Positions 24,768-47,646 of a stretch of DNA of 64,000 nucleotides are shown here, piece after piece. Below the pieces are notes generated by a model. It searched no databases. It was not told where the DNA came from and saw nothing but the letters and a program-made list of their open reading frames with translations. Positions within the stretch are counted from its first letter, which is position 1, and each line of letters opens with the position of its first letter. Source of the DNA: Lepidodermella squamata. Lineage: Eukaryota; Animalia; Gastrotricha. The stretch covers positions 434,001 to 498,000 of the forward strand of contig JBLDXI010000021.1 of assembly GCA_047495785.1 (NCBI GenBank). Direction: 5' to 3'. A program made the position numbers and the translations under genes.

Positions 24768-24778
24768 TGATAAGATAA
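24768..24778 (+). promoter_or_regulatory. Tandem GATA-type motif TGATAAGATAA upstream of paralog A
   Basis: The same 11-mer occurs at 30245-30255 upstream of paralog B. Function is inferred. Confidence 0.45.
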
Positions 24779-24866
24779 CATCCTGTACTGAAAACACGAG
24801 ATAGCCATTGGGTTAAAAGGTCGGTAGTAACATTTATTCGTGCTCACCTACGTTTTTTACGACGAG

Positions 24867-27800
24867 ATGGATATTTTTGCGCTAGCTGTTATTCTCTTAG
24901 CTACGGCAGTTAATTCGGCTTTCAGCCAGAAAGTAGCATGCTCTGTCATTGATGACGCGTTATCGAATTATTATGAAGTGTTTCTAGCCAGATACATCGG
25001 TAAAAGGGATGAACACGCTGGAGTGTGGCTGCTCGCCCTATACTGTCGAACCGATAATAATCTCTGCAAGAGCTGTGCCTATGAAGATGCTGGCACGGAA
25101 ATTTTCTGTAAGAGATCGAGAGAATTTTCGATAAAGAATTTGAGCTCCAATTATCTCAGGCTCTGATGCATTCCATCATAATAATAATGGAGAGCTTGGA
25201 TGTAGGAATTTACCCGATTTGATGGTTGACGAGACATACGTTTTCTTCGTTGAGGAAGGCGCTCCTTCGAACCTACGGGAGCCAGGTTTTCTTGGACCGA
25301 TCAGTTACGACGAGTGGGAAGAGGCGTTATCGATTTGCAACATCATTTGCCTTGATGTTAATTGTGAGTTTTTTCCCGATTTTTCTAATAAAAATTGGCC
25401 GAAAATTCTCATAGTTTGCTGCAATGGGATTAACGCTAAGAATGCGACGACGAGTTCATTTCCCACCTCAACAGCAACAAATTCTATTACGGAAGAGATT
25501 ACGGCAGTGACGGAGCGGAATCAGGAGGTTTCATGTCAAGTTGTAGACGACGCGCTTTCGAAAGGGCAACATGTATTTTTGGGCAAATACATTGGTAAAC
25601 GCGAAGGCACATTACGTGATGACGGATGGTGGCTCCTAGTCGAGCCATGCTTCACTGATAATGACCAATGCCAAAGTTGCATTTACAAGGACGGCGACGA
25701 ACCGATGCAAATTTTCTGTTAGTCATCTGAATAATTAGGATAGGCTTTGATAACTTTCTTATATAGGTCCGAATGGCTATAATTCTGGAGCTGGCTGCAA
25801 GGACTTGCCTGATACAATGAATGGAGAGCAGTATATTTTCTTTGTCGCGAAATCATCCGGAATCATTTTGAGGGAGCCGGGTTTTCTTGGACCGATTAGT
25901 TACGCTGAATGGGATGAGACAATATCGACATGCGAAAATTTCAACTGCACGAATGTTTCATGTAAGAATTTTCCGATCAAGTGAAATCGAGACATTATAA
26001 GGTTATTACAGTCTGCTGCATTGGGAACAAAAACTCTACGACCACGAAAATGACGACTAGCAATCCTACAACAATTGAGACCACAACTCTATTGACTACT
26101 ACTCAAGATTTTTGCGGCGAAATCTGCGATAGCAATTGCTTTTCGGATCGGTACAACAACGCCGATGAAGTTTTCTTAGCGAAAGTTACGGGCACGAATT
26201 ACGTTGACGTGCAATGTTACATGAAAAGCCGCAACAGCAATCCTCAACAAGCGCTTGCCTTCACTATTACAGGTACTGAGTTATAATCATCGGATGAACC
26301 ATTTTCACCAATTTAATCCTAATAGGCTTTTGTGGAAATCAGACATCTTTATCTATCGGTTATACCTATCTGATTTTCGCGAAATTGGCCACTCCTAAAC
26401 CGATGTTCATCAAAATGACATCGCAGGCCATTTTGATCGAGACAACGGAAGCTTGGCATCGGGCTGAAGGTTTCTGTGGTTTTTCAGGACCAACTATAAC
26501 CAACCAACACTATCCAGTTTCACGTAATTACAAACACTTTAATGCAAACATTGAAGTCAACTTATTTTACCAACTTCATAAGCATTTTGCTGCGAGAAGC
26601 CACAGCCGGACTGCCACGGTTGGACTGTTCAGGAAATCGAACAGGCTAATCAAATAACGACTCCGGTTCCGATGACTACCCAACAACCTGACAACAGTTG
26701 CGTCGAACAATCTTGCCCGTATGAGTTTTGCGACAGCGAATGTCTCAAATTACGCATGGACAACTCCGATGCAGGTAAACTCGATCTATCGCTAAATCTT
26801 TCAGTAAAATTATGATTTCAGTAATTTGGGGCGAGCACATTGCTTTGCCAGGCTATGATGACCCGTCAATGATCAACGTTTACTGCTATTTGAAAAGGCC
26901 CACGGACGGAAAGCTCGATGATGGTACTGTTTTTGCCAATGGTATAACGTTTGATTACTCATCGTTCCGACTTGCATTGAAAATAACTGTTTGAAAAGGC
27001 CCTCCGGATGTGGGAACACGATGCACTCTTGACGAAATGTCAGTTCCATCGTCGGGGCAGTTTATGTTTTTCTTAAACGAAACCGAAAAAGGCCAACTTC
27101 GACCTTATTATCGGATGATTGCTCGGCCCATTCCAGTTTCGTCTTACGTCTCATGGCGACATCTCACGAGCTACGTTGGGGTTAACATGGAAACACCTAA
27201 CGGTTTGAAACCGCCGTATCCACCATGTAAAAGCTTCAACTTAGCGACTCGATATTGTTAATTGCTATTTTTCCGCAGTTGGCGATTGCACGAGAAATGC
27301 GTTCAACACTTTATACGACGTGAAACTTTCGAAATTGGTAGAATTGAACAGCGTACCTTGTCCTGGTGCCGCACAAAGTCTTGCTGTTAGGTTTAGCGGA
27401 GTTTCAGCCGAATCGGGCCGCATAGTTGTAAAGGCAAATTCAACGCCAAGAGGGCCGTACCAAAACTTGATCAATTTTTGCGCGATCAATCTTGATGCAC
27501 CAGGGAATCAAGGTAGTTTGGATGTACGGTTGGACAATAGCAGCTGCTTGTACAACGAAGAATTTTGGGCTGGAGATATTGCAGTTTCGCTGGATCCTGA
27601 TACGAAAACGGGTTCAAATGTTTATCTCCCGGCGAGCCAGCCGATTCAGTTTCCAAGTAACGACTCTTGGCTGGCGATAACTCAACTGTGTATTCTATCT
27701 GGATTTTCAATGTCTGGGCCCAATTGCGTGCCGTGGAACCCCTCGCCGGATCAAGGCTGCTTTATGGACTTGATGGAAGCTGAAGTTTCGACACCCGGTT

Positions 27801-30067
27801 TCAGCATTCAAGCGAAACGTATGTTCTTAATTCCCCCTTTTTGCCATGATCGATAATATCGAATAGGTCGCAATTGTCCGAGCATAAACCAAGATTCCTT
27901 TCTTCAGCGAGCTGACAAATCTTTCCGGGTTATATTTGGCAGAGTCAAGGCTATCAATTACCAGGCTCGAGATATAACTTTCATCCCGGACTGCACAATA
28001 AGATCTGAAACCCAGCCATTACTTGACGAGTTTCACGCCTACGGTACTTTGAAAAAGCTGAAAGCTGAGTTTCCCAACCTTTTGTTTCTTTCAGTTTCTG
28101 GCGATTTAGACGGATGTTTCTCATTTAACAACGATACCATTGAAAATAACAAGACTTTAATTATATTCCTCGACAAAAACAACTACATGACTCAGCGTGA
28201 GATTCTGATTGAGGATTTCAATCAACTCGGATGGTTTGCTAGTACTTGCGGCAGTCTATTGACCGGTTGCAAACCTAAGCTGGACCCTCGTGAGGGTTGC
28301 TATCCGGATCTAAGCATTTCTGAAGTCATGAAGAACCCTGTCAACCCTGCGAATCTTCCCCAGATCGTATATCCTACCTGTTGTAAAGGTCTGACTAGCA
28401 CTTTTACAGCTGAAGTGTTCACCAAAGCTGATCAAATCGTTTGGGCGACTATCGATACGATGATGACAGCGACGATGCCTAATCTAACTGCAGGAGGGAA
28501 TCGCTTGATTGGTGTCAGCTTGATAGCCAGATGTTACATGAAAAAAGTGGTGGAAACAACCCAATCCATTGCAGCGATGGGTAAAACATGAAAAAATTAC
28601 GAACAATGCGCAATGAATTTGTTCCTTTTCAGTGAACTTGACATCTCTCACTACGCCACTGCACGTTGGGATTGACTACATCTTTGTTCTAAAGCGAATT
28701 CAGAACAATCCGTGGAAGAATGTTGTTTATGAGATCATGACTACACCCTTGACGGCTTCTAAACCTGTTTGGAATCAATTATGCTCGACTTGTGGGATCA
28801 ATCCTGTTTCAAAATCCAGTGATGTTTTGTCAGGAAACGGGGATGATAACCGTTGCGGAGGAGCTTTGTCTTGCTCCAAAATCTCGTCTAGCTCTTCGAA
28901 GGATTGTTTAAAATATTTGGATCTTAGCGATGAAAAAACAGTTTGCAAGTCGAAAGACAATGACTTTGCCCAACGAATCAGAGCCGCTACAGATAATACA
29001 GCAGTTATTTTCGGGGAAATTCAAAGCGTTAATGACCAAGAGGAGGTTCCAATAGAATTGGTCGCGCGAAAAAGCTTGCTTACGGCATTCCCTTTGTCGA
29101 ACATCAGCCATCGCGCTACTCAGAGAGTTCTCTTCAGATCAATTTGCCAAATTTCAGGCCAAACGAAGCCTTCAACCAGCCTTGTTCACTTTAACTGTAA
29201 TTCTTCACAAATTGTCCGTCTTATACTTCTTTATAGCTTTTGTTTTCGAAAGATTATGAAGCTGAGTGCTTCCACGATCGAGATGTCGACTTTAAGATTG
29301 GAGATAAATTCTTGGTGTTCATCAATGCGCAAGTTGACATTCTTACATCGGCTCCGATTCCCCTGCATGACGACGGCCTTTCGATGGTAGCTAAAAGTTG
29401 CGCAATTGACCCTCCACCTTTTGCACTCTTCGAAGGGGATGGCAATGATCAATACGAAGAAGCGTGCCCACAAATAGCCCTCCCGCCAAAGCTATGTAAC
29501 AGCTCGTTACTAGTGAGAGATATCAGGATACCCCCTGTTCAACCTGATGGTTACACAGTGCAATGGTGGGGCGCGACTCTGATAGCAGTCGCTTGCTTAG
29601 TTGGTCTGATATCGGCAATTGTGATTGTCAGAAAGATGAGCAAGAGAAGGGTCATGGCTCTCAGTAACCGGAACGCAGAGGCTCGAGTTGTTCAACCATT
29701 AGGCGCTCATCTTTTTGATCAAGACTATTTATCGATAAATAGATCGGCGCCTAGTAGCGGTATGTCAATAAACACTGGTGACATAGATGAATTTGTGGGC
29801 ATGGACTCGATTCGGAGGCCTTGGTCAGCGAATGACGACGAGTCTAGTCGGGCGAGATTGATTCCAGCTGCGAGTTCTCAAACTACGGCTGCAAACAGCG
29901 AATCGCCAAGTCCCTCTAATCAACTGGAGGCGCTCGCTGGCCCGAGTGCGAAATCGACATCCTCTCGTGCGAAACGGATTAGCAAAAAACAAAGCGAACA
30001 AATGCTGAGGCAGCTGGCGGAATCACCGGGCAGTCTTGACTTCGGAACTGAAGATCTAGTCTCTTAA
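24867..30067 (+). CDS. Paralog A: type-I membrane protein with ~8 tandem Cys-rich NtA/NTR/TIMP-like modules
   Basis: Signal peptide MDIFALAVILLATAVNSAFS. Repeated module C..(S/D)...R...(a/d).V(F/I)(W/L)G.....C..K.....C.....Y(l/i)fF.....P.....W....C, with Thr-rich linkers. TM WWGATLIAVACLVGLISAIVIV followed by RKMSKRR and a disordered tail. Multi-exon gene with ~50-nt introns. Fold assignment is from pattern only. Confidence 0.85.
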
Positions 30068-30244
30068 CTGATTTTATATTCATGAACCTGATTTCATCGA
30101 AATAAACTAGTAATTTCAAGTTGTTTTGAAAATTCACAAAAATTGATATGCAGTCATAGTATTGTACAGTGGCAGGGTGTATAATGTTGTTGTAAGTGTG
30201 TACATTTAATCGTACAATTCGACCGTGACGCAGAGGTCACGCTT

Positions 30245-30255
30245 TGATAAGATAA
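30245..30255 (+). promoter_or_regulatory. Tandem GATA-type motif TGATAAGATAA upstream of paralog B
   Basis: Identical to 24768-24778 and in a similar position relative to the ATG. Confidence 0.45.
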
Positions 30256-30380
30256 AAAAACTACAGTAGGTAATGGATGCTAGTGATGGCCTCAACTGAA
30301 CCATAGATACCCCTGCGAACTTTTTGCCTGCGCAGACAATATCATTCCTGTCCAATTTTTCTATGTGATTTCACACGGAA

Positions 30381-33300
30381 ATGCTGGCGCAAAACTTGCT
30401 TTTAATATTTACTTGTTCATGCCTGGCTTCTCAAACTGCCGTACTAGCTGATCCTAATCCATATGATTGCATTACCCCGACTTGTGACGTGCTTAAAGCG
30501 GCAGCGGGAAAAGGCGAAGAGATTTACCTAGCAAAGCTACTTGGCATGCAGAAAAATGGAATTCGAGACGGAGGCTGGCATGTTACGGTTGGTAGATGTG
30601 ATCCATCGAATTGCACCGATTGCAAGTACCGGAATAATGAGACTCATTTCTGTAAAATATTTTGCTTCAACAACGTCATCGTAGCATTAAATTGATTTAT
30701 TTCCAGGCCCAGACCAGGTTTGCAAAAAACACGCACCTGAAACAGCTATTGGTAAAAACTGGGTATGGTTCATGGGTGCTGGGTTCGAGAATTACGAAAT
30801 CGTCGATTTCGGAGGTCCATGTTCGGTGCCGAAATGGCATTCAAAGCTGCTCTCAGAGTGTTCGCTTTACTGCACTGCGGGGTCATGTGAGACTATGGTA
30901 CAGGAAATTTAAATGAGGCATGTACATTTTCCCTTTTCTATACAGTTTGCTGCGCAGGGGACTCACTTCCCACGACTGAGGCTGCGACTACTACGACCCC
31001 AGTTGTCACAACCCAATATGATCCTTGTTTACATTCCGATTCTTGCAACAGCACATGTTTCCAGCAACGATTTAATGATGTTAACACCGATGAAGGTTCG
31101 ATTTGTAAAGGAATGATTGAGATACCGAAATTAAGGACCATGAAAAGTTTTTCTCGGTGAACCAAACAGCTTTTCCGGCAAAGATGTCAAAGCCTATTGT
31201 TGGCTAAAAGCTCCGACAGAGGGCTTTCAGTCTTCTACAGTCAGCATAGGTGAGTTGTAAAAAATGGCGTGCACTTGCCAAGGATTGATTCTCTGTTTGT
31301 TTGTTGTTGTTCTTGTTTGTTTCTGTTGTTTTCAGATTACGGAGAAAATTGCGGTGGAAATGTGATAAATCCTCCAACCCCTGATGGCAGTCTTTTCTTG
31401 TATTTCGTGAGACCAGACAAAGTGTTCCCAAAGCCAATCAACAAGGTGTTAACCGCTGTTCCAATACAAATCTCATCTCTAGAAGCCTGGCAACTAGCTA
31501 CAAGCTACTGCAGCGTTGAAAGATCTGTCCTAACGCAGAGCGTCATTTTGCCATGTGAGACATGACTTCTTTAATTAGCGAAGATTTCGATTAACCGTAA
31601 TTTCCCAGCGTTCTGTTGCAATTATTTTAACGGCAGCAGTTGCGCGACCAATATATCTGTTAGCGACATTGAAACAGATAATAGTTTAACGACTCCTGTA
31701 TCGCCTGATGGGCAGTGTAGCGAAGAAACATGCCCGTTTCAATCATGTGACAGTGATTGCATTGCCGCGAGGTTTGACGCTGCTACCGATGGCAAGTTAA
31801 CATTATTTCTCGATTTCACGAATTATTCTTGTTTTTCGCAGTGTTTTGGGGTGAAAATCTTAGTGATGGAGTTGAAGTTACCGTTTACTGCTGGCTAGTT
31901 CGGAGCAAGTTGAATGTTGGCGGAAAGGCCATAATAAACGGTTTTATTCGCAAAATTCGAAATCATTGAAAATAATATTTTTATTTAATGCAGGTGATCC
32001 TGTTGTTGACACGCGATGTACCAAACAGCAAATGGCGGTGCCACCGAAAGGCTCGGGCTTGTATTTGTTTTTCGTGCAGTCTACTGCTCCAAATATTTCT
32101 CCTGAATATGCAATGGTTGCGAGACCAGTTCCACTGACAAGTTTAGCAGAATTTTCGAAGATTTCAATTTATTTTAATAATTTTAGGCTACGTTGCTTGG
32201 TCTCACGTAACCCGGCTGACGAAGCTGATTTATCCGATTCCTCCCGGAACGAATCCCACTCTTCCATGTATAAGCTTTTGGAAATTTATTTGAAAAAAAT
32301 GTAATCTGACGGATTATGTTTACAGTTGGAGTTTGTGCGATGAGTACTGATAACCCCTTGGACGACATAAAAGTGGCCGACTTGGTTGCAATGAATTCAA
32401 TACCTTGCCCCGAAGTTGCCGACAGTTTAGCAATCAGATTCGGGGAGATTATGCAAAACTCCGATCGGTATGCCATAGTAGATTCAGACATCATCACTGC
32501 ATCGCGAGAGGGCAGATTCACCTTGCAAGACTACTGCGTTTTAAATCCGATAGCCGGATTGAGTGGAGGAAGCGGGCAAGTGATGGTCCTACCGCCAGAT
32601 CAGAACGCTTGCTTCAGTATGGATGAGATTCTGGATAGTACTCATTTTGTAATAGCAATTAAAAAGCCCTTCGTCAGTGGGCTGACAGCTGGGAGCCAGT
32701 CTCTGTTAAAGCCGAACGCTACAGAAGGCTGGAAAGCAATCACTAACATGTGTATGTTGCAGCGATTTTCAATCGAAGGAGACCCATGTATTACCGCACC
32801 GATTGACACATGCTTCTTCGACTTGTCGAAAAAAGATCTCGAAACTCCAGGTTTCAACTTTGAGAAAACTTGTAAGTAAACTGAACCTTTTTCAGCTTGC
32901 TTGATGTGCTTTTGATTCTAGTGGGAAAATGCAAGGACATCAAACCTGATTCCTTTGCAATGCGAGCAAAAAGTTCGTCCCATATCATTTACGGCAGGGT
33001 TACAAAAATCAACTACGCTGGTCGAAACTTTTCCTTCTCGCCAAGTTGCACATTAAAATCAGTCGATTTATCACCGATTAATGATGAAATAGTTGTGTCT
33101 GGTAAGCTTTATTCCTTAATGCCCTCATCGCCTCACGCTTGCTCATAGTTCCAGCCCATTATGATGGATGTTTCGCTATTGGCGGCAAAACAACTTCAAT
33201 CAACAGCACTTTCATTTTGTTCCTGACTCGGCAAGATCGCAATTTTGTCTTGTCTATGCAGGAAATTCATATAAATGGCTCTGAGGCATTGCAGCTTTTC

Positions 33301-35170
33301 GCTAGCAAGTGTGATACTTTGGTTAACAGTTGTAGCCAGAAAGTGGATCCTCGCGTTGGTTGCTATCCTGACCTGAGCGTGTCTTCAGTTTTAACGAATC
33401 CCGACAACCCGGGAAATCTGCCCCCATTGGAGGACCCGACATGTTGCTCTGGTATTGATCCGAAATTCTCAAAGGCATTGTTTGACCAAGCTGACCAGAT
33501 CGTTTGGGGTACTATCGATAGTATGGGCAGTCTAACTCCACCTAACGCATCCAAAAATGGAGACCGTCTTATAGCAGTGAGCCTGGAAGCTGATTGTTTC
33601 ATGAAGGACATTTCGCCATCAGATTCACAGTCTATGTCTGCATTAAGTACATTACATACTTCTTCGTAATGATAACCTTCCTGATACTTGTTGTACTTCA
33701 CAGTGAATCTCGGGTCGCTCATCCAACCGGTCCACACCGGGGTCGATTACCTATTCGCGCTCCGGCTCATCAAAAACAACCCTTGGAAGGAAATACCGTA
33801 TGAAATAATCGCCCCTCCAATTCCCGCGACACTGTTTCTCTGGCAATCGCTTTGTTCTGTCTGCGGCATCAATCCGGTAAATAAAACGTATCCAGATGGC
33901 ATGGATGGTGGCCGATGTGGTGGTCCTTTGTCTTGTTACGATTTCGCGCAATCTAATAACTGCACTATCGAGGTCGACTTACGCGACAAAAATGCATCCT
34001 GTATCGGCGCATCCGATGACTTCAGCGAACGAGTGGAAACTGTCACAGAAGGCTCCGCTGTCATTTATGGCCAGGTAACGTCTACAAGCAATGCCCTGCA
34101 ACCCGCTGATTCTCCAGAGCGTAAGGTTAAGTTACGAACAGCTTTCCCGCTCAATCAATGGATTCGCGCATCTCAAAACGTTGTTTTCGAACCGATTTGT
34201 CAAATTTCCGGTCAATCAAAGCCGTCTACTTCAACCATTTATTTTTCATGTATACCTGACTAATTTAATGAAAAATATGCTTAATTGTTATTTTCCTGCA
34301 GATTTTGCTACTGATTGCTTTTTTGATGACGAAAACCTCTTGAAAACCGGCGACAGCTACCTGATCTTCTTGAACCCACACACAAGTATTATGACGGCAG
34401 CTCCAATCTCCATCGATGACAACGGCATTACGGTAGTAGCGCAAAGTTGCGCCATTCTACCACCTCCCTTCCCAATATTTGCCATCGACAAGGCTGATTA
34501 TTACGAAAACATTTGCCCTAGTATTCCGCAATCTCCGAAAATATGCAACAACTCAATCAGTGTGGCGAGTATCACAAGAAAATCACCGGATGTAGCATCA
34601 TGGGAAATGCCCGTGTGGCTTATTGTGGTCATAGTGATTGGCGGTATTGTGTTTGTTGCAATCATAGCGTTTGCTATGCTTCGTTTTGCGTTTATGGGAC
34701 CAATTGAGCCGGCTGCCGCCGCGACGCATGGAACTATTTCAAATCAATCTAACCGGTTACCAAGTCGAAATGTCCGACATACTCCTTTGAGCATGGTTGA
34801 CATGGATGATGTTGATGTAACTCCTCGGCGCCATCGCAGGTTGAGTCACAGGAGTTTAACTGTTGCTGCAGAATTCGGTACCGATGCAACATATAGCCCG
34901 TTACCACCACCTCGCCGTCCTCGATCAGTAACAGGTGATCGTGAGGCTCTATTGGCGAAAATGAGGAACGCAGAGGAGGAAACAACGTCCTTATCGTCTC
35001 TTCCTATAAACATAGAGAGGCGTAGCTCATTGTCTGCATCGGTGTCTTCTCTACCGGTGACGAGAACGCAGCCAATCAACATTCTTGCCCAGATCGCCCA
35101 ATCACCTGACGGCGATGATGATTTCGGCGTTCTCGACCTGCTGGGTATAAATAACAGTAGCGAACGGTAG
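30381..35170 (+). CDS. Paralog B: type-I membrane protein with ~7 tandem NtA/NTR-like modules
   Basis: Signal peptide MLAQNLLLIFTCSCLASQTAVLA. Strongly similar to A (DPRxGCYPDLS, ADQIVWxTID, NNPWK, CGINPV, RCGGxLSC, ICQISGQxKPSTS). TM VWLIVVIVIGGIVFVAIIAFAML. Confidence 0.85.
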
Positions 35171-35480
35171 CAAATGTTATTTTGTGCTTCGCTAAAAATC
35201 ATTAAATTTTCATGAAGCGCTCTCTCGTGATTAAAACAGCGCGAACATAGGTCTCGCTTTTGTGAAAGGAAAGTCTTACTATAATGTGCGAACACAATTT
35301 GTGTAGAATAAATAAACAACCCACTCTATAATGCCCCGGTGTGGACAAGCCGTAAACAACAAATCACCTTGAATAGAATAAATTTGCCGCCCCTTTTTAG
35401 CAGCGAGCCATTGTTCTGTGCCCACCGCAAGCAGGCTCAAACATCAACATTTTCAATAGAGTCGCAGACTAATTTCTTAA

Positions 35481-36751
35481 ATGACGCTGAGGATGAACAA
35501 TATTTTGGCGTGTTTGGCAAGTGTGCTTTGCTTGGTATCAAGTTACCCAGTAATTTACCGCCCGAACTGCATCCCAACCGATCACTTCAGTGAGGTAAGG
35601 AAATCAAAATTCAAAAAGCTCCGTACGCGAAATGAGATGATCTTGTCTAGCTTTTAAATCGATCACACCAAGTTCGATGGATGAAGGTACTGTCTTACCA
35701 CGAGATTTCCTACCACCCGATACATTCAAGCCAGCCGCGAGTAATTCTAACAGAATGTGACAGGTCTGACTGCCTAACCTGTACTCATATCGGCGACTTG
35801 ATCGACGCATTTCCAGATCGTGAGTTTATCATAATTTGCTTTCCCACGTGATAGCTATTTTTCCATAGAATCGAAGTGCCACCATCTTGAGATAGGGAAA
35901 ACGTATTTGATTGGGACCAATTCCAATGATGACATTGTTGCACCACCGATTAACGTCGAACCGGCTCACTGGTCACAGTTGAAACAACTCTGCTACTTCA
36001 AGGACCGCAATCAATTGACACTATTCCCGCCACCATTAGCGAAAGAGCGATGTCTTGCTGCCCCTACTTCAACGCAATGCATTCCGGATGAAATACGGCT
36101 CAATTCCTTTCTACGTTCGACCCCGTTTGAAGCTGATGATGAAGGTTTGAAACTTTGCTACATATTTGGGTTTATTTGATAGGTATATTTTCTATAGAAA
36201 TAGCTTTGAAAAATTGCTTACCACAATCGGCAAGTTTCGCGAAGCGGCTTGCGTTCTCGGGCGCGGCCAGTGTGGTTCAGTTCACCGGCACCTTATGGGG
36301 CCATGGTTATCATCAAATCGGTGCACGTACTTGCAATGACGCTCAGTGTGTCGACCTTATTTCGTGGACTGTTCGTAATAATAAATGTGAGCTCAACTTT
36401 GGCAACGCATCCGACATCAAACACGACATTTTCTTGCGATGTGAGTTACTTTTTATGTGCCCCAACCTAACTGAGATTTCGTCGCAATTACTTTTAGATC
36501 CTATCACCTCCAAATGCTACAACTTTGATTGGAAAATCCAGCAAAATCAGCCGTATCTCGTTTTTCACGAGCCGATTGCGAATCCTGAAATGCCCTTTGT
36601 GTGGATGCGAGCGAATCCGGTCTTGCTCTCCCCGGAATTGTGGGATCAAATTTCAAAGACCTGCTACTTCAGCAAAGGCTGCGGCAAGGAGTCGAAGTGC
36701 TTAGAAGACGTCATCCTCATCCATCAGCAGCAAGCAAGGATGATAGCATGA
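35481..36751 (+). CDS. Paralog C: secreted 2-module NtA/NTR-like protein with no TM
   Basis: Signal peptide (MTLR)MNNILACLASVLCLVSS. The modules match the first two of paralog D (CDRSDCLTC vs CDPADCLTC; RLAFSGAAS in both; LVFHxPI...WxxAxPVLL...WxxISxxCYFS). Stop at 36751 with no hydrophobic anchor. Confidence 0.78.
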
Positions 36752-36979
36752 TTATACAAACCACTGTATCAAAACCCTTTTAAACAAAGACATTATTGTT
36801 CGTTTCATTTGAGTGCGATGACTGAATCTTTTTCAATATGTTTTTTAAATATATTTGTTGGAAAAGGGGCCCTTTAAAAATCCGTTGATTTCACAAAGAA
36901 ATTGCATTCATTTATTTGAGAATTCACCGTGAAAGCGTTACTAGAGTTGAAAGACTGATATCACATCATAAGATTGTCA

Positions 36980-37558
36980 TCAATCGATCATTCTAATGCC
37001 AGGCAGCGTTACGTTGGAGTACAGGGCGTAGTTGGTCCACTTATTTGGCTTTACCGTGGCGTACTCCATGCGAAATTTCGTTCGCTTCAAGTTGAAAGCT
37101 TTGAAAGTTTGCAACAGCAATTGTTCTTCCCGCATTAAAAAGCCAATCATCAGCTTGACGCTGGCATCACCTCGAGTAACTTTCAGCACGGCTTGGTACA
37201 ATTTCTCCATCGGGATGTAGAAGAAAGGTGGGTCGAATACAACGACCCAAAATTTATCTTCCGGTTCCATGTCGATCGGTTTCAATATGTCGAAATAGCG
37301 GTATTTTGGTAGGTAATCAAACCTAGTGTCGATGTCGAGCAGAGGTTCAGCCCGGTCATGATCGGCGTAGAAACCATGCGACAGCGAAGGCGCAGCTAGG
37401 CAGCAGATTTCGCCCTCGGGAACGATGCTTAACGCCGCAATCAACTCGTTGACTGTTTTTTTCGTCCAGAAGTACTGCTCTAAATCTCGCCGCTCGACAA
37501 AACCGTCGACAAACATGGAACGATTCTTTCTAGCGGAGCTTTTTTCCACAAGTGCCAT
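36980..37558 (-). CDS. Intronless class I SAM-dependent methyltransferase, N6-adenineMlase/EEF1AKMT1(N6AMT2)-like family
   Basis: 192-aa single ORF with EQYFW..T, CCLAAPSL, LLDIDTRF, YFD, VVFDPPFF and ALYSN, the motif order of that family. Substrate unknown. Confidence 0.8.
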   Translation of the reverse strand: MALVEKSSARKNRSMFVDGFVERRDLEQYFWTKKTVNELIAALSIVPEGEICCLAAPSLSHGFYADHDRAEPLLDIDTRFDYLPKYRYFDILKPIDMEPEDKFWVVVFDPPFFYIPMEKLYQAVLKVTRGDASVKLMIGFLMREEQLLLQTFKAFNLKRTKFRMEYATVKPNKWTNYALYSNVTLPGIRMID

Positions 37559-37710
37559 TTTAGCTGGAGTATTAATCTCGAGCTTTAAATTGGTAGTCGT
37601 ACCGACTATATTTAGACAACAAGAAAGCGTTCAACGCCTGAATTATGGGTCGAGTGGGCAAAAAAACGCGGCTTATATAGACAGCACATGCTCATTATCA
37701 ATGCGCAGCT

Positions 37711-40582
37711 ATGAATCAGCGGGTGAATCATGCTGAGCGAAGTGCGCCGTGTGTGTTTGTGCAGCTGTTGGGTGAGTCATCGTCATAGCAGATAGCGCTA
37801 TATGAAGTATTTTATTGTCTGTGTGCGGTGTTTCGCGTGAGCGTTCGTCGTCGCTGCCTTTGTTTTCCAAAGTATTATTAGTTTTGGTTCGTTGTATATT
37901 ATTTGGTTTGGCGGCCGCCTCAAAAACTGGTTGTTGTTCGCGGTTAATTTTTACAGCAAACATGTTAATAGCGTTGAGGTGTGAAATGGTGTCAACATAA
38001 GCGGTCACACTTAGCGATTTGAAATTGCAAAATATATATACCACCGCTCATTTTACTGTCATAGAAACTGAGAGAAAAATAATACCCAGCATAATAGTAA
38101 CATAAATTGAAACAAAACACCATTCACCGCCGTTTTGTAATCATCATCATCATCGCCATCTCGTGCGCCCTATATTGACAAACGTCATTCGCATAACAAG
38201 AACGAAACTTGTTTTTAAAGCCGATGAAACTAGATATAACATGCGAGTATTTTGCGGCTTATAAGTCACTCTGAGAAAAATGGCCAGGGAAAGTTTGTTA
38301 CTAATCGCTACGTTTTTTACCTGTCGCATCGATGCCCTCGTTTTTCGAGAGACGCAAAATACCAGACACGCAGCGGTGAGTGCTTGAATGCAATCGAATT
38401 TGCTCATTATGCTTCCTTCCTCATCTCACAGCCTGCCCCGCCGGTGAAATATTTTGAGAGTCCTAACTTGGCCCCTATTGAAATCAAAGAATGCGGGGTG
38501 GTGAAATCGAATCGATCAATATTGACCGGTAACGTTACCGCGGAATGGAGCGAATTTCCATGGATGGTTCGCTGATCATTCATTTGAAAATAAGAGCTCT
38601 ATATATTTTTGTTTCAAGGTTCAACTGGATGTTATCTTCAAATCGGAGGTGCAACCACGTCTTTGCGAAGCAGTACTGATAGCAGATCAGTGGCTTTTGA
38701 CGGCTGGACAATGCGTTATGAAAGACGACGAGCTCGTTACAATGTGATTTCAAACTAACCAATTAAATCCCTCTTTTTTCATTGTATGAATTATGCAGCA
38801 TTGTAGCCCACATGGGCAAGCATAATGCATCGATGAATGGCGAGCCGGGTGAGCTGGTTCAGTACGTCGAAGCAATTCTACATCCAAATTTTTCAACTGA
38901 GCGCTGGTCCCTCTTGTACGAATACGATTTCGCGCTGCTTAAGCTTCGCCGACCTGTTCCGTTTTCATCGCAAATCAGTCCTATCTGCCTGCCCGATGAC
39001 ATTTGCCAGGATGCTTCGAAGATGAGCAATTATCGAAGCTTCTGCGACGACGTGATTGCCGTTCAATGGGGTGCGGATTTATATCATTCGATAATTCGTT
39101 TCCTGCATCGTTTTATTCCAATTTAGATTTCCAAAGTCGAGTCCTTGTCAAAAGCAATATCACTGTTCAGGATGCTGACTCTTGCGATGCGGCGTTGACC
39201 GAGTATGAGATAGCTGATATCCCTCGCGACAAGATGTGTACAACCAAAACAGCGGCGGGAGGTTGTTTTCAGAACAATATCGGCGGTCCTATGATGTGTC
39301 GCAAGGGCTCAAAATACTTCACCCTCGGTATCATGTCCGGGGCGCTCGATGAAATTTGCCCAAGCACGGGCAATCCGTTGATTTACAGCCGCATTTGCCA
39401 CGCTATGGATTGGATACGAAAGGTCACGGCACCAGCTGCAACTCAAAAGCTACATCATCGCAACCATAATTCCGCTCGATATTTTGTAACAAAAATTTTG
39501 AAACTGAGAGCAATTTAGAATCATTTCTGCGCTTATTAGGGTCAAGTAATGTCCGACACTCCAATGAATACTTACAACAGCCTAGAGGACTTTCAGAATG
39601 CCCGTCTCTCGCCAGGTAACAATTGTTGGCTAAAATTCCTAGCCCCCAATTTTCTCAACAACATTTGACAGCTCTGCAACACGCTTGCACTGTTCCTTCT
39701 ATCAGCAATGGCAGGGTCTTCGCCGATGAAGAAGAAATGCTCTACAACACATTGATGCCAGTCAACTCTGTCATAACCGTCTTATGCTCGACCGATCTCG
39801 GAATATCCGTAACTGAGAGCGTATGTCTTTCGACCGGACTCTGGTTTCCTGGTCCTAAAGATTGTGACAAAGAAGGTTTCTCGAGCTATTATTCTAACTT
39901 TTCTACATCTACATTCAATTCTCTAGGAACTCGAGCTGACGTTGCAGATGAAGGAGTTTTAATTGAGGAAGCTAAGGCACCAGAGGTGACAAAGATAAGC
40001 ATTGAAAAGCCTGAGAAACCTGAGAAACCTGTGCAAATCGAGCTCGGGGGCGCAGCTGCGGCTGGTCGGCCTGCGGATGTGAAGGATTTGTTGCGAAAGG
40101 GTGGGGCTGATGTCAACGGCCGAACCTACGACGGGTCTTTATTCTGCGGTTGGGAGCGGATGAACAACGCAACAGCTTTGATCATCGCAGCAGCCTGCAA
40201 CCAGTCCGCTGAAGTCGTTCGACTTCTGCTCAGCAACGGAGCTGACCCAAATATTGAGGCGAGTGACGGCACCACAGCCCTCATCGCAGCGGCTTCCTGG
40301 GGACGAGTCGACGTTATGTACGCTCTAATGGAAAGGGGAGCTGATGTGAATCTGAAGAACAAAGTTGGCAAAACGGCGCTTATGAAGGCAGCGAGTAACG
40401 GCAACTACAACGCGGTGTCTTTGTTGCTTGAGCGAGGCGCAAATGTTGATGAAAGTGACGTAGATAACTGGACAGCTCTCTCTACTGCAGCCTTCTATGG
40501 GCATGCTCGTATTGTCCGGCTGCTGGTGGATAACGGGGCTGATAGATCGAAATGCTCATACGCTTTGTGCACGTCACTTTAA
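37711..40582 (+). CDS. Catalytically inactive trypsin-like domain + CCP/sushi + ~5 ankyrin repeats (5' exons uncertain)
   Basis: ECG...EFPWMV, LCEAVLIADQWLLTAGQC (His->Gln), YDFALLKL, SPICLP and CFQNNIGGPMMC (Ser->Ile). In-phase intron 39486-39539 leads on to the sushi domain CTVPSISNG...C...C...GLW...C, then ankyrin repeats (TALIxAA...GADxN). Start 37711 is tentative; the core is secure from ~38250. Confidence 0.72.
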
Positions 40583-40918
40583 AGCGCATCCTTTTCAACA
40601 AATTGACTGTGAAACCTATTTAGATTTGACAGTCGCTACGCATTGAAAAAGGAAAGTAGTGCTTTTTTTATTTATATTTTGGCAATCGTCTCAGCTACAC
40701 TGTCAGTTTTCACGATTCATATGTCGGGCTGTCTTATCAAGAAGTGACTAGATAAACCGATAAACCTTGACTGCACTAATGCGCAGGGGATGTCACGCTG
40801 CATAAACTTACGTGCAAATTGTATTATGACCTTTCCAACCCTGCTGCTGCTTTTACATTTGCAATAAAATGGTTGATTTTTTTCGCAATGAGGCGTTTTG
40901 AATAGAGTTTTGAATAAC

Positions 40919-43900
40919 ATGGGTAATTTCGGCTTGTTCTGGGTCTTTTTAATTTCGCTCTACACAAGCGAGGTCATTGGCAACCAGAACTGTTCAACGC
41001 AATATACTACAATGGAAGAGGTATGAATAACTCCAATCAGGTACAACCTTTTTTCATCATACTGCGTACAGTACCTACAAAGCGCAACGTCAGTATATTG
41101 GGCAAAGGTTTTGAGAATTTATGCTGAGCCTCATGACCCGAGGCCGAAAACTGATCTCCTCTCATGCGACCCAGCCGATTGCCTTACTTGCGCTTTAAAT
41201 CGCCAAATTGTTACAGTCCGTTTGCCATTAGACAGCTGGAAATCTGCTTTGAAAGTGGGATCAAATTACATCATTGCTACCAAGTCTTTCGATGGACCTG
41301 AGCCTCAGCTTATGCCGGTCTTCTGCCCTATTGAGGTGTTGCCTTATCAGTGGGCTCGGTTCAGGGCACTGTGCGATTTTCAAAAATCAGGCGTTTACAA
41401 CGGTTATCGAGTTAAGCCAAAAAATTCCACATGTCCGAAGCTTCCCGGCGAATGTGTAAGTGGTAAGACGATCGAACAGCTTTATCATGAAGCCGAAGAG
41501 TTCAAGTACCTTGGTAAGCCTTAACGCAAATTTACGGATTTTCTTATTACTACCGTTTTATCAGTCGATCAGCCAGCTCTTTCGGTCTGTGTACAATATT
41601 CGACAAGTTTTAGCGATAGGTTGGCCTTTTCCGGTGCGGCCAGTTTGATCTATGACGTTAAAAGCAAGGGTGTTGATTTGTCGGGGGAATTTCAAGAAAT
41701 CGAAGCAAAGATTTGCAACGACGAGAGATGTCCGGCTTTCAAGTATAGTAGCCAAGCAAAGGCAGAATGTAATTCAACCTTGGGAAATGCAGCGAATTTG
41801 ATACTGGAAAGTCAAGATTTTTGCTTTCAAAGTGAGTGCATTTCACAACCCTTCGAAAATGTCTCATTTTCGATACTTTGCAGAGACCAAAGACAACTCG
41901 ACATGCTTCCAATTTTTTCAAAATTGGCCGGCTAGCAACATTCTGCCGAGTGATACCTTCCTGGTTTTTCATACGCCCATTCGCTGCCCATTGAATAAAG
42001 TGTGGATCATGGCTGAACCGGTGCTTTTGAGACCATGGTCTCCTGGGTGGCTAAAAATATCTCAGTTATGTTACTTTTCCGCGAGGCAATGTGATTGCCA
42101 ACAAGATTACGACTTTTCATTGCCTTCATACCAACCAACACCACCTCCGACTACACCAAAACCCACTGAAGAAGGAGGACATAAAATCTGCGAAATCTCG
42201 GATCCATCTTGCCCCCAAAACAGTGATTGCCTATCGGAGAGGATGAAGTTATCAACTGCAGGTAAAATGATGAATAACTTAAAGCTCCAATAAGCAATTG
42301 CTACCATTTTCCCCCAAGTTTTCTTCGGTAAGGAAGCCATAGACGTCGGGGGAATCTACTCAATTCAGTCAACTTGCGTTTTTTCGGAATCATCGTCTTC
42401 GCACCAAATATCGCCAGGAGAAAATGTTTTCGTCCGATGTAAGATTGGAATATATTTTTCAATTTTATCATCCTAACACATTTCACAGATCCCGGAAACT
42501 TGAATCCAAACGTTAGTTCTTGCCTGATTGTAGCATGATGTGCATGATCTCGCAAAAAAACAGGAAAACTGTGCTGCAATCGTTCCTCCCAAAGCAAAGG
42601 GAAATTATTTACACTTCGTTACCAGGGATGAAGATGGTAATTTCACTGCGTCTGCTGCGTCCATCTCGGCAGATACAGACGATTCGTGGTCACTGATTAA
42701 ATTGCAGTGCGGATCCACGATGCAGCCTTCAGCTCTTTCTACTCCCAAGCCTTCTTCTTGTAAAAAGGCACAAGGAGTTGGCGATTGCACTGCTAGTCTC
42801 GATTCGCCAAGTAAATGCCTTGCCCATGTTTCTGCTAGCGAACTATCGGAGCTCAATTATCCACATAAATCGTGTGCGGATGGTCACTGTAATGATCCGT
42901 GGTGGAGTGATTGTTTGAGCAGTAGAATTGCTCTGTCAGAGATGGGTAGGAACGTGTGTGATTGCGTAATCTTCGTAAACTTTAGCTGCCTCATTAGTTT
43001 ATTGGGGTCATGTTAAAAGCGTGAACGGAGATAATACGATCGATATCGAGGTGACATGTATTCTCAAGGGATACCTCGCAAATAAGGATCCCCCGACACT
43101 TAAGGTGCATTTATATCCCGGTTGGTTTTTCGCAACTTTCAACAAGCAAAGCTTTAACGATTTTCACTAACAGCAACTGGCTCGCCTAATTTATGGCCTG
43201 GTACAATCAACAAAAACAGCTCCATTTACCACATGTTTTTCATCAAACGGGATGGATTTAAGGCTCAATATTTCGAATTGGCTGCGGATACGATTGAAGT
43301 GTCGCCTGGGGAAGCGTACGAGCTAGCTCTGAAACAGTGTGGCATCTCGCCTTCGCCGACTGATCTTGGATCGGGTACGGCACTCAAAGGACACAAATTT
43401 ACCATAAACATTTTTTCTTATTCAGAGCAATTGTGTGGGTTACGAAAGGCGGACCCAAATGGGCCGGGGTGTTTGTCTGACGTTTCTGTTTCCGAAATCG
43501 ATGCTATCAACAACTATCCACCAACAGCGGGTTGTGAAAACCGTCCCACGGATCCCAAGTCATGCGATAGTGACTGGCTTGCTGATAGGTTTGGAAGATC
43601 ACTGGATGGTAAGCTTTCATCTAATCTATCAAAAGATGTGCGATCATTCTTCGATTGCTAGTTTTTCTCGGCCAGCTCGCTAATCCGATGAGTATGAACG
43701 GCCCCATTCACTGTTTCTTGAAGAGAACTTTGCCTGCTAGTGGCGATCCTTTTCCTACAATACCTGACTGGTTCGACGTAACATGTATGTTAAATGGAAG
43801 CATTAATCTTGTTATGGATTCGCATTTTTCATAGATCCCTACGGAGAATGCCATAATAAAACAGTCGGCATGATCGATCCGAACAAGTTCTACATTTTCT

Positions 43901-46900
43901 TTTCCAACGAATCGATTTTCCCTTTCAAGCGTGCTGTTCGATTTAGCGCGATGCCAGTGAAAATCGAAGATGACAAGACTTGGAATTCAGTGAAGAGACT
44001 GTGCCAAATTAAACTAGAACCGACTAGTCGAGCTGGCAATATTCCATCTTTAAGTATTCGTCTCTTTACACACAAAAAACTTGAAGACATTTTTTTTTAT
44101 AACTATTGCAGTTGGAGATTGTTTGCCGATTGATCGAAAGCCATGCTTCTGCAACATTTCTGTTCCGAATCTGCCATCACTGTATGCAGATCCTACTACT
44201 ACCACTACTACAACAACTACTACTACTGTGGTACCATTAAAGAGCACCAGTATGGTATCGCCCGTGGATGGGGTAACGAGAATCGGGTGTGATAAGATGC
44301 CTGATGTATCGGACAAGTGTAACTCAGATTGGATTCTCGATAGAATGGACCTTTCGACGGAAGGTTAGTAATTAGTGCATTATTTCCTGAGACCTTCTTA
44401 CTTCTTCATGTATCATTCTCCAAGTTTTTTGGGGCACAGTTACTTCAATAGAGCAAATCACTATTCATTGCTGGCTGAAAAAAGGCTCAGACATTGATCC
44501 TGCTCAAAGCCTCGCACCCATAGTCATCGGTAAATTTCTCTCCAATCCAATAAATACATTTCGAGCTTTCCTTGTGTTACCAAGAGGCTGATGAATTCTG
44601 CGGGGCTAAGATACGCGATTTGCTCCACGTACAGTCCCATTATTTGTTCTTCTCAAAGTCTAACATTCCCGGCAAACTTGTCTACGTTCCTTCTGCTCTT
44701 CCTATTGCGATAACCGACTTCCGACAATGGGAATCTATAAAAACTATATGCGATGGCAATCTTTCAATGCCAACATCGGTAACTCCTAACGACTTCCCTT
44801 GTAAGTTGTTCAATTCGGGAATGAAATATGAAGACAAGTCTTGAAAATGAAAGGGAACGATTGCATTGCCTATGACAAGTATACTTGTCACTGCAACGTC
44901 ACTGTATCTTCTTTGACTACGGCAACGCGGACTAGGATTCGCCGCTCATCGCCACTTGCTTCACTTGCTTCAGCTTCGGAATGTGACCAGCTTTCTGACA
45001 GCTTGGCTACTAGATTCACTTTGGATGGGAAGCTGACCATGGGCGTTAACCCATCAGGACTTTTTTGGGGTGAAGCGACAGAAACGCTGCAAGATCGGTT
45101 CGAGCTATTGGTAGATTGCTCTTACGCGCAGCAAAACTATTCTGCTGGAGATCATTTAACACTCCTCGCTCCAGGTAGTATAAGTTCCTAGATCATTCTT
45201 TACCTCTGATCTTCTCTCATTCAAATTACAGCTGGCGCAGTTTGCTTCCCCTATTGCACCGTTGATCAAGTGTTGCGCTCAAGCTATAAGCAAGTGATTC
45301 TCGCTGCATTGACTGGCGATGACTTTTTACACGGATTGGCTGAGCCGCTTCTTGTGAGCTCTGAGACAGCTTGGGCTGCCATTCAAAAAATGTGCCTGTT
45401 TCGGCGATTCAGCCAAATGGGTCGCTCAAGGGACTGCCTTGGGGAAATCCCTGACGTTGATGGTTGTTTCATGGATTTGTCAGCAACCAGCCTTGGCTAC
45501 GCATCTCTCGACTTTAACTTGCTTGGTTAGGTTTAATTATCACCGGCTTATAAAATTTAAAAACTTTCCTTATAGGCCACAGATGCAAAGCCATATCACC
45601 TGATTTGCTGATTGAGCGGTTGAACCTGGCAACATACGTCGCATGGGGTTATATTTCCCGCATTGATTTCAACCGAAGGAGCTTTGTGTTTTCTCCTAAA
45701 TGCAAGCTGAAAGATCAGGATATAATCCACGTCAAAGAAACTGCTTTCGAAGTTTTAGGTAAGGCTGAAACAAAACCACCTGAAATTTAATGTTGTTATC
45801 ATCTTGAATCAGTGGACGAAAATATTGACGGATGCTTCATGATTGACGATGCCGTAGTTGATCTCAAAAAGCCGATAATTGTCTTCTTGGATTCCAATCA
45901 AAAAATGATAGCGAGAGAAATTTTCGCGGACAAATACCAGCTTTCTGTTTTCCTTGCGTCTTGTGATACCATGGTGTTCAAAACTGATAGTCCGGAGTGT
46001 AAACCACTCTTGTCCAGAGAGCAGCGTTGTTTCGCTAGTCTTAGCATATCTGCGGTTACTCAGCTAGCCGAAGGACAACAGCAGCCATTTACGCCTATTA
46101 GTATTGTGGAGCACTTCTGTGCTGACGTAGAATCGAAACTTTCCGCAGTGGCGGCTAAAGCCGATGAAATTGTCTGGGGAACAATCGAAACTATTTTCCC
46201 CGTCACTAGTCCAGACCTCGTTAATACTAGCGATCAACTGGTCGCAATTGGCTTTGTCCCTCATTGCTTCATGCTTGGAAACGTAACACAAGGTTCGACG
46301 TTCGGTATGCGATAGCTTTTATCACAATTCAGTCTTCCAATTACTAATATGATCCTATATAGTGAAAACCAGCATTCTAATGTCGACTTTGCACGTCGGT
46401 TCGGACTATATTTTTGTTTTGCGGCAAATTTTCAACTCACCGTGGCCGGTCGTCGCAAATGAAGTTATTGCACCTCCGGTTCCTGCATCTAGAAGACTTT
46501 GGCTAAAGATCAGCCAGTCAAGATTTATAACGCCATCAATAAGTGTCAGTCCCCAAACTGGTACTAGGTGTGGAGATACGGCGGCTGTGAGCAGCGCTGC
46601 TACACCCAGCAGTGACGGTGACATAGACTTTGCCTCCTTAGAAATATCTTGTCCGGGAGCATCAGATGACTTGACGGACCGCTTAAACCCTGGCGATTAT
46701 GCTACTGATACAATCTGGGGGAAAGTCGTCGAGGCCAAAATAATCTCACGGCCCTTTTCCGCGCCCAGCTTATTTTCAAAAGCAAGATTTCTGGTACCGC
46801 TCAGAGCCGCCGTTTCGAGCGTCGTTATTCAAAGAATAACACTTCTCCCGATCTGTCAAATTTCTGGGGAGGTCAGGCATCTCTTAACAAAGGATGGAAA

Positions 46901-47646
46901 CATCGAAAGCGAATGTATGGGTAGAAAAATATCGGAGTCAATGTCTATACTGATTTCTTATTTAGATTTTGAGGCGGACTGCTTCCACGAGGAAAACTTC
47001 CGGGTCGAAGAAGGACTTAAATACCTATCTTTTATAAATGTGAAAAACGATGTCATGCAAGCCTCCCCAATTCCGGTGAACGATAGTTCAATGGAGATTG
47101 TTGGCAATTCTTGCGACATAGATCCACCAGATGAAGCCAGCTTTGGAGGTACTTACCTGGATAACTATGTTTACAAATTGAAAAAAACTGCTTTTCTCAG
47201 GTCTTGATGATTTTTCATGTCCAAGGGTTCCGCCACAGCCTCCGCTATGTGAGAAATATGTTAGTGTTGCTAAAATCAAAATACCGATCGCAACTAGCTC
47301 GAGTTTGCAGTGGTGGGAAATATTGCTGATCAGTTCTGCCGTGGTAATAATGGTTGCCATCGGCTTTGTTATCCTTGTTAGGAGGAAGCGAGCGAGATAT
47401 CGCCAGGTGGAGTATTGGATGGACGAAATCGACAGAGATCCCGTGCAACAATGGGAAACTGCCGAAGAATCTCAGCCTGAGGTGACGCTAACCCAAAGGA
47501 TATTAGCGGATGCATTCCACAGTGACTCTGATGATGCCAGTCTCAATTCACCGGACCATGACAGGATGAGGACATATCGGTTACTGCCCGCGGCTGAAGG
47601 CATTCATGCTGCCACACCTACGGATGAAGGAAATCAAATCGCTTAG
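40919..47646 (+). CDS. Paralog D: type-I membrane protein with ~10 tandem NtA/NTR-like modules
   Basis: Signal peptide MGNFGLFWVFLISLYTSEVIG. Repeated C.SD(C/W)L..R...S..V(F/Y)WG...C.LK modules. The last four modules are collinear with A/B (GCFMDL, ADEIVWGTI, LHVGSDYIFVL, ICQISG, EADCFH). TM WWEILLISSAVVIMVAIGFVILV followed by RRKR. Confidence 0.85.

Follow-up and report, generated by a model that had tools for sequence, protein, structure and literature searches.

A tandem gene cluster of predicted membrane glycoproteins built from putative TIMP-like OB-fold modules in the gastrotrich Lepidodermella squamata

What would a cell-surface protein do if its outer part were a string of small modules resembling TIMP, NTR, or NtA, domains otherwise met one at a time? 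The question is raised by four co-oriented genes with intact open reading frames (ORFs), here called A to D, at positions 24867-47646 of a 64,000-nucleotide stretch of Lepidodermella squamata DNA (contig JBLDXI010000021.1; the whole stretch is called the window below). The interval is exact at both ends, running from the ATG of gene A to the final base of the gene D stop codon. An original prediction, made from the sequence alone, had described four paralogs here with about 8, about 7, 2, and about 10 modules, three anchored in the membrane and one secreted, and had compared the modules to the NtA, NTR, and TIMP folds. Here we determined gene models for the cluster, delimited the modules, and modeled one module class. 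The family is a known fold, as predicted by modeling, in an unprecedented tandem, membrane-anchored architecture that is invisible to sequence annotation. We favor, with a probability of roughly 0.6, the picture in which A, B, and D would be module-string membrane glycoproteins engaged in multivalent binding.

The structure of gene A was determined from contigs of two public runs aligned to positions 24700-30200. Contigs from run X1 are spliced copies of the gene, and those from run X2 are unspliced DNA. All 13 introns of gene A (47-59 nucleotides) were seen as GT-AG joints in the run X1 spliced contigs, and joining the exons from the ATG gives one unbroken ORF of 1507 amino acids ending at 30067. 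These joints show that gene A is transcribed and establish its exon structure. Genes B, C, and D were modeled by a splice-aware dynamic program, with splice-site matrices and codon usage trained on A, followed by curation by hand; the program recovered gene A itself. For B and D, manual inspection of the DNA removed long introns that were spurious and restored exons that the automatic models had missed, with changes that include a GC-AG intron in B and a 52-nucleotide intron in the second module of D. Each of the three genes has a complete ORF in its final model. Of the words sampled from gene D, 37% occur in run X1, which is RNA-derived, and this suggests that D is expressed. Across the final models of all four genes, introns are 46-86 nucleotides long, and 47 of the 50 are in phase 1.

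We delimited 27 modules of 113-185 residues, 8 in A, 7 in B, 2 in C, and 10 in D, and grouped them by collinearity into ten classes (T1, T3, T4, Dd, S1-S4, C1, and C2). A, B, and D each have a single strongly hydrophobic span near the C-terminus, and the only hydrophobic stretch of the gene C protein is its N-terminal signal, with no membrane span. By hydrophobicity, A, B, and D are predicted to cross the membrane once and C to be secreted. In blastp, A188-1506 and B34-1348 are 35% identical, and A amounts to B plus one additional N-terminal module, the two being otherwise collinear over nearly their full length. A353-1369 also aligns with D726-1785 (25% identity), as does B149-1188 with D692-1771, and the four membrane-proximal modules, which we call the stalk, are therefore common to A, B, and D. 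C14-353 matches D11-345 (30% identity, E 8e-31), and by this likeness gene C is a free-standing, predicted secreted copy of the two tip modules of D. Modules A1 and A2 are duplicates with 52% identity. Distal linkers open with FCC and are rich in Thr and Pro, and stalk modules abut directly. Each membrane protein has 15-18 N-x-S/T sites, and 22 of the 27 modules are acidic (isoelectric point 4.2-6.7). The module counts, the membrane spans, the secreted state of C, and the collinear membrane-proximal modules thus agree with the original prediction. Its "constant stalk, variable tips" holds for the order and number of modules but only weakly for their sequence, with A and B 32-53% identical in stalk modules and 28-43% in distal ones.

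The family was also found outside the window. The single-exon stalk module, as a profile of two sequences, was searched against 1.84 billion representative proteins and gave four matches, P0001-P0004. P0001 and P0002 are spurious, being long cysteine-free repeat proteins with scores summed from 11-18 short stretches. P0003 and P0004 come from ORFs of ENA metagenome contigs (38% G+C). Among these representative proteins the family was found in one related species only, where it again forms a tandem cluster, of three members. Gene X1 is D-like, with modules in the order C1-C2-T3-T4-S1-S2-S3-S4 and then a membrane span; gene X2 is A/B-like, with T3-T4-S1-S2-S3-S4 and then a membrane span; and gene X3 is C-like, encoding a secreted C1-C2 pair. 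Identity to the window is 24-50% per module. The related-species genes (contig L001, 2900-12704) have fewer introns and exons of 340-459 codons, with whole modules in single exons, and the C1-C2 tip stands there on a gene that also carries T3-T4, a combination absent from the window. Word-index searches of 5.8 billion clusters returned proteins of the related-species locus only, scans of JGI metagenome contigs found no relatives, and a word search of the open-access literature turned up no account of NTR/TIMP-like modules in tandem arrays. These database and literature results support a family that is undescribed and, as far as sequence searches reach, narrowly distributed, as had been proposed when it was called lineage-specific. 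Maximum-likelihood trees of the concatenated stalks and of the tips, comparing the window with the related species, have very long tips and no supported inner branch, and we therefore make no claim of orthology or tip swapping between the two.

The repeat is statistically real. An iterated hidden Markov model (HMM) search seeded with the T3/T4/Dd class was run against 43 real modules, from the window and the related species, and 4,300 shuffled decoys. At E<1e-3 it recruited 37 of the 43 modules (23 of the 27 in the window) and none of the 4,300 decoys, the best of which reached E 0.035. Profile-profile comparison of the classes with hhalign, with the related-species sequences added, connected all ten at 76-99%. 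Links are closest within T3-T4-Dd (98.7-99.0%; Dd vs T4 98.7%, Dd vs T3 98.8%) and run on through Dd-S2 (96.5%), S2-S4 (95.6%), T3-S3 (94.1%), T1-T3 (88.3%), C1-C2 (83.5%), T4-C2 (77.8%), T4-S1 (77.3%), and S3-C1 (75.9%), with most alignments in register across about 100 columns. Gene structure gives independent support for the repeat: eight of the ten classes have a phase-1 intron at a shared internal point, just before the Cys or aromatic residue leading into the Y-h-F-F strand. The phase and position of the introns fit duplication and shuffling of modules by exon.

For the fold, we modeled residues 13-138 of P0004, a T4-class module that is encoded by a single exon in the related species and shares 32-34% identity with A4 and B3. 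The AlphaFold2 input had 30 rows, this module and 29 exon fragments of T3/T4/Dd modules from A, B, D, and the related genes. The resulting model has a mean predicted local distance difference test score (pLDDT) of 75 and a predicted template modeling score (pTM) of 0.70, and its elements run helix, three strands, short helix, two strands, helix. Foldseek against the PDB placed agrin NtA first (1pxu, 1jc7, and 1jb3; probability 1.00, E 4e-3, template modeling (TM) scores 0.47-0.49 over 124-127 columns), followed by TIMP-1, the PCOLCE NTR domain, and meteorin NTR domains. TM-scores for the TIMP-family rows were 0.41-0.50. The check by AlphaFold and Foldseek that had been proposed for these modules thus returned, for the T4 class, the very folds that had been named.

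An exhaustive structural alignment against 48,161 representative chains, independent of Foldseek, led to the same folds. Its top 13 matches are all TIMP-like, and generic OB folds follow at Z 5.0 and below. Z-scores were 7.3 for NtA, 6.8 for both N-TIMP-3 and TIMP-1, 6.7 for both AceES-2 and the meteorin NTR domain, 5.8-6.5 for the C345C domains of C3, C4, and C5, 6.0 for PCOLCE, and 5.4 for Sizzled. In a second-look alignment to Foldseek's best 1,000 chains, N-TIMP-1 reached Z 8.2 (98 residues, 3.1 Å) and NtA Z 8.0 (19% identity). All 48 of the best PDB entries in this second look are TIMP-like, spanning NtA, TIMP-1/2/3, meteorin, C3/C4/C5, PCOLCE, Sizzled, AceES-2, and cobra venom factor, and the first unrelated entry stands at Z 4.3. 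The TIMP-like matches cover about 100 of the 126 model residues, including the N- and C-terminal helices. Because the match list is TIMP-like only, the coverage is this high, and a gap separates these matches from other OB folds, we assign the T4 class to the TIMP-like OB fold, which is established here at the level of prediction. The architecture together with the predicted fold of this class is, in our judgment, highly probable. The other nine classes would probably share the fold, by way of hhalign links to the modeled class at 76-99%. The NtA/NTR/TIMP-like fold of the original prediction accordingly stands for T3/T4/Dd, where a confident model matches TIMP-like folds only, and may extend to the remaining classes through the profile links.

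Conserved Cys positions number up to seven in the T4 class, and some lie near TIMP Cys1, Cys13, Cys70, and Cys124 by alignment residue numbering alone. For comparison, NTR/C345C modules have six conserved cysteines paired 1-4, 2-5, and 3-6. Modules D4-D6 (42864-44757) lose cysteines pairwise: D4 lacks the third N-terminal Cys and the second-half Cys, and D5 and D6 both lack the second and fourth N-terminal Cys. These paired losses hint at disulfide partners. A motif, C-x-[DN]-[LVI]-S-[VI]-[SE]-[ED]-[IVL], is found repeatedly in both species, where modules join and within the juxtamembrane cysteine loop, and may be a connector strand; examples are GCYPDLSISEV, GCLSDVSVSEI, and CLNDISVSEI, at 28271-28330, 33334-33390, and 43440-43500 in the window and at 7200-7260 and 11000-11060 on contig L001. 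An Atlas shape search with the T4-class model gave mixed rows, among them one agrin-like NtA cluster at TM 0.58, and was not decisive. An ESM Atlas feature search with A5 and the T4 module gave no usable match, and ESM Atlas structural rows for P0004 were discarded because the Atlas model has a pLDDT of 0.27.

Agrin NtA (1jc7, 1pxu, 1jb3) is the best or joint-best structural match of the T4-class module over both alignments (Z 7.3-8.0, 18-19% identity, 96-101 residues). Like NtA, the module is predicted to be a β-barrel flanked by N- and C-terminal helices, about 125 amino acids long, extracellular, and non-inhibitory. NtA is found in one copy at the N-terminus of secreted or type II proteoglycans, whereas the family here has 2-10 tandem copies and three of its members appear to be type I membrane proteins. 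The TIMP N-domain (3ma2, 1uea, 3cki) has its fold in common with the T4-class module (Z 6.8-8.2, 90-102 aligned residues), and the first cysteine of the module falls close to the TIMP Cys1 position in the structural alignment (model residue 6 vs TIMP residue 2). Unlike TIMP, the modules have no Cys1-X-Cys at a free N-terminus and no C-terminal subdomain, and they are internal to a long chain. The fold is also common to the NTR/C345C modules (netrins, sFRP/Sizzled, PCOLCE, C3/C4/C5, and meteorin) and to hookworm AceES-2, at Z 5.1-7.0; over both alignments, the values are 6.7-7.0 for meteorin, 5.6-6.5 for C3/C4/C5 C345C, 6.0 for PCOLCE, and 5.1-5.4 for Sizzled. NTR/C345C modules are extracellular, disulfide-bonded binding modules, as the modules described here would be, and their central hydrophobic strand motif, YLLLG, may be comparable to the Y-h-F-F of this family. 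The netrin NTR is basic and binds heparin, whereas the family modules are mostly acidic. To our knowledge, known NTR modules are single in each protein, usually at the C-terminus. In matrix biology, complement, Wnt, and axon guidance, the TIMP/NTR/NtA fold is familiar as a single-copy binding or inhibitory module. In design, A, B, and D resemble cadherins and Ig/FN3 adhesion molecules, which are type I membrane proteins with an ectodomain made of a string of small β-rich modules, vary in module number between paralogues, and have a soluble isoform or paralogue. This is a design analogy only: the cadherin, Ig, and FN3 folds are unrelated to these modules, and we claim no sequence or structural relationship.

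The first cysteines of the four proteins lie in ACSV, DCITPTC, NCIPT, and NCSTQ, 4-8 residues past likely signal cleavage sites. Direct reading of these first modules finds no Cys1-X-Cys at any of the four mature N-termini, as had been predicted, and the remaining modules, lying within the chain, have no free N-terminus. The zinc-chelating mechanism of TIMP is therefore not available to them, and on these sequence grounds TIMP-type metalloprotease inhibition is excluded for A-D. We propose that A, B, and D are type I membrane glycoproteins whose outer part would consist entirely of 7-10 disulfide-rich TIMP-like OB barrel modules. The four abutting membrane-proximal barrels would form a rod or stalk common to all three, and the distal part would be more flexible, with modules that differ in number and class between paralogues and with Thr/Pro-rich linkers that are probably O-glycosylated. 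We infer a division of labor between stalk and tip. They would bind an extracellular partner multivalently and in a non-inhibitory way; this partner could be matrix, a second cell surface, or a soluble protein. Secreted C could act on the same partner as the D tip, either competing for it in soluble form or serving as a bridge. Known non-inhibitory members of the TIMP-like fold are binding modules. Because of this precedent and the lack of a free N-terminal Cys, a binding or adhesion role is tentatively preferred over a structural-coat or protease-regulating one, at slightly less than even odds.

One alternative is that A, B, and D are structural components of a surface coat or of an apical or basal matrix, mucin-like glycoproteins that tether the cell to matrix rather than specific recognition receptors. 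Agrin NtA tethers agrin to laminin by binding the laminin γ1 coiled coil, and NtA is the closest structural match of the T4-class module by sequence identity (18-19%). The Thr/Pro-rich linkers and the 15-18 N-x-S/T sites would also suit a coat, as would the low-complexity cytoplasmic tails, in which Pfam matched no recognizable signaling domain. However, no NtA sequence similarity was found with Pfam, and the conserved secreted tip copy (C, and X3 in the related species) suits the logic of a ligand or competitor better. We regard a structural coat as unlikely.

Rather less probable is a role as membrane-tethered metalloprotease regulators acting through exosites, as the PCOLCE NTR and the TIMP C-domain do, with many modules that would trap or display proteases. 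TIMP N-domains stand near the top of the structural matches, at Z 8.2 and Z 6.8, and one report describes PCOLCE NTR domains that modulate metalloproteinase activity without classical inhibition (PMC2871463). Against this, the first modules have neither a free N-terminal Cys nor C-x-C, and internal modules cannot present an N-terminus. The cluster also encodes no protease partner, the neighboring trypsin-like gene being a serine-protease homologue of an unrelated family.

Several results weigh against the picture of multivalent receptors built from TIMP-like barrels. With hmmscan, the sequence check that had been put forward for the original prediction, exon pieces, single-exon modules, and related-species exons matched no Pfam family, TIMP (PF00965), NTR (PF01759), and NtA (PF03146) included, at E<=1 or at E<=10. 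Profile searches of PDB sequences with two alignments returned no NTR chain, and their best match, at E 0.5, was to LysR regulators. The modeled module comes from the related species rather than from the window, and its Z-scores of 7-8 are middling in absolute terms. AlphaFold of a window module, A5 (class S1), with a 6-row alignment gave a pLDDT of 36 and was unusable, and Foldseek found no match for that model. A usable structural model thus exists for one of the ten classes, T3/T4/Dd (A3, A4, B2, B3, and D3-D6). The A1/A2/B1 class is the weakest link in the repeat: hhalign connects it to T3 at 88%, the iterated HMM did not recruit it, and its second half alone aligns to the family profile. 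Individual exon junctions are confirmed by RNA in gene A and are predictions at the 37 junctions of B, C, and D. That the likeness to TIMP, NtA, and NTR is convergent or a modeling artifact, and the modules an unrelated new family of cysteine-rich β-barrels, would fit the absent sequence-level link in Pfam and PDB profile searches, the shallow alignment of 30 mostly fragmentary rows, TM-scores of 0.41-0.50, and the caution that a Z below 8 can reflect a common arrangement, but it is improbable given that the leading PDB entries, 48 of 48, share a single fold family, come from several sequence families, cover about 100 of 126 residues, and stand apart from generic OB folds. From the model, the most fitting description of the modules is a new and highly divergent family with a predicted TIMP-like OB fold, outside the Pfam sequence definitions of TIMP, NTR, and NtA.

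If multivalent binding by TIMP-like barrels is correct, the TIMP/NTR/NtA fold is used here as the repeat unit of whole receptor ectodomains, which would widen the set of folds so used. By analogy with Ig, FN3, and cadherin modules, TIMP-like OB modules could even be a general-purpose tandem scaffold for surface receptors, with D and C (X1 and X3 in the related species) as a system of receptor and soluble decoy or bridging ligand peculiar to an animal lineage that has been little sampled. Such a use of the fold is not known from model organisms; this broader reading is possible but doubtful. The 27 diverged copies would provide a natural series for the binding range of the fold once freed from protease inhibition. 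The cluster would also show clearly how an extracellular protein family of animals can be hidden from sequence annotation and revealed only through structure prediction.

Table 1. Features of the module gene cluster, in window coordinates
Feature	Position	Strand	Description	Basis
Gene A	24867..30067	+	14 exons, 1507 amino acids; signal peptide, 8 modules, membrane span, 145-residue cytoplasmic tail	Spliced contigs and ORF
A distal modules A1-A4	24927..27225	+	Thr-rich FCC... linkers between modules	
A membrane-proximal modules A5-A8 (stalk)	27226..29419	+	Collinear with B4-B7 and D7-D10	
A5	27281-27817	+	Whole module in one exon; class S1	
A transmembrane segment (predicted)	29564..29629	+	Residues 1341-1362	Kyte-Doolittle scan and coordinate mapping
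Gene B	30381..35170	+	14 exons, 1356 amino acids; signal peptide, 7 modules, membrane span, 162-residue tail	Curated prediction
B distal modules	30456-32266	+		Module delimitation
B stalk modules B4-B7	32267-34468	+	Collinear with A5-A8 and D7-D10	
B membrane span (predicted)	34607-34681	+		Hydrophobicity
Gene C	35493..36751	+	4 exons, 366 amino acids; signal peptide, 2 modules	Curated prediction
C modules	35556-36011 and 36206-36682	+		Module delimitation
N6-adenine-methyltransferase-like ORF	within 36983-40582	-	Single exon	PF10237, E 2e-19
Trypsin-like plus ankyrin-repeat gene	within 36983-40582		Unrelated family; trypsin-like part a serine-protease homologue	
Gene D	40919..47646	+	22 exons, 1865 amino acids; signal peptide, 10 modules, membrane span, 88-residue tail	Curated prediction
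D tip modules D1-D2	40979..42092	+	C-like pair	blastp and delimitation
D modules D3-D6	42180..44757	+	Four copies of the modeled T3/T4/Dd class; Pro/Thr-rich linkers between	
D membrane-proximal modules D7-D10 (stalk)	44970..47129	+	Collinear with A5-A8 and B4-B7	
D membrane span (predicted)	47311-47379	+		Hydrophobicity

The window is eukaryotic-type sequence with about 43% G+C and very short introns. The cluster is flanked by housekeeping genes of an ordinary kind, which encode a YJU2 splicing factor, a Lon protease, and a Ski2-type helicase. The best named matches of YJU2 are in insects, a cnidarian, and molluscs, at 38-63% identity across the aligned parts, as expected of a metazoan that lacks a close annotated relative. 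The interval is not wholly family: between C and D, at 36983-40582, lie three unrelated genes, among them those of Table 1. Within the window, tblastn found no extra module copies and an Rfam scan found no match.

The cytoplasmic tails of A and B close on a similar acidic motif, SLDFGTEDLVS in A (29950-30064) and DDDFGVLDLLG in B (35090-35167). YRLL lies near the C-terminus of D, and HRLL at the end of gene X1 in the related species. These tail-end motifs could be sorting signals.

The gene models hold several further observations. The predicted GC-AG intron of gene B (31792-31841; GCAAGT...CAG, 50 nucleotides) is sited where homology with A demands a splice; the other 49 introns all have GT donors. 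A predicted micro-exon of 23 nucleotides (42489-42511) inside module D3 has good flanking splice sites and encodes PGNLNPN. Intron 2 of gene A (25364-25414) is 51 nucleotides long, in frame, and stop-free; it is spliced out in the run X1 contigs and, if retained, would lengthen the first linker by 17 residues. Clusters of substitutions were also seen in gene A in the public runs, at 25575-25636, 27036-27107, 27715-27745, and 28117-28185. In the latter two, the variant is carried by the single contig covering each place. The variant stands at about half depth at 25575-25636, in both runs, and at 27036-27107, in DNA run X2 only, which suggests two haplotypes or strains that differ inside modules.

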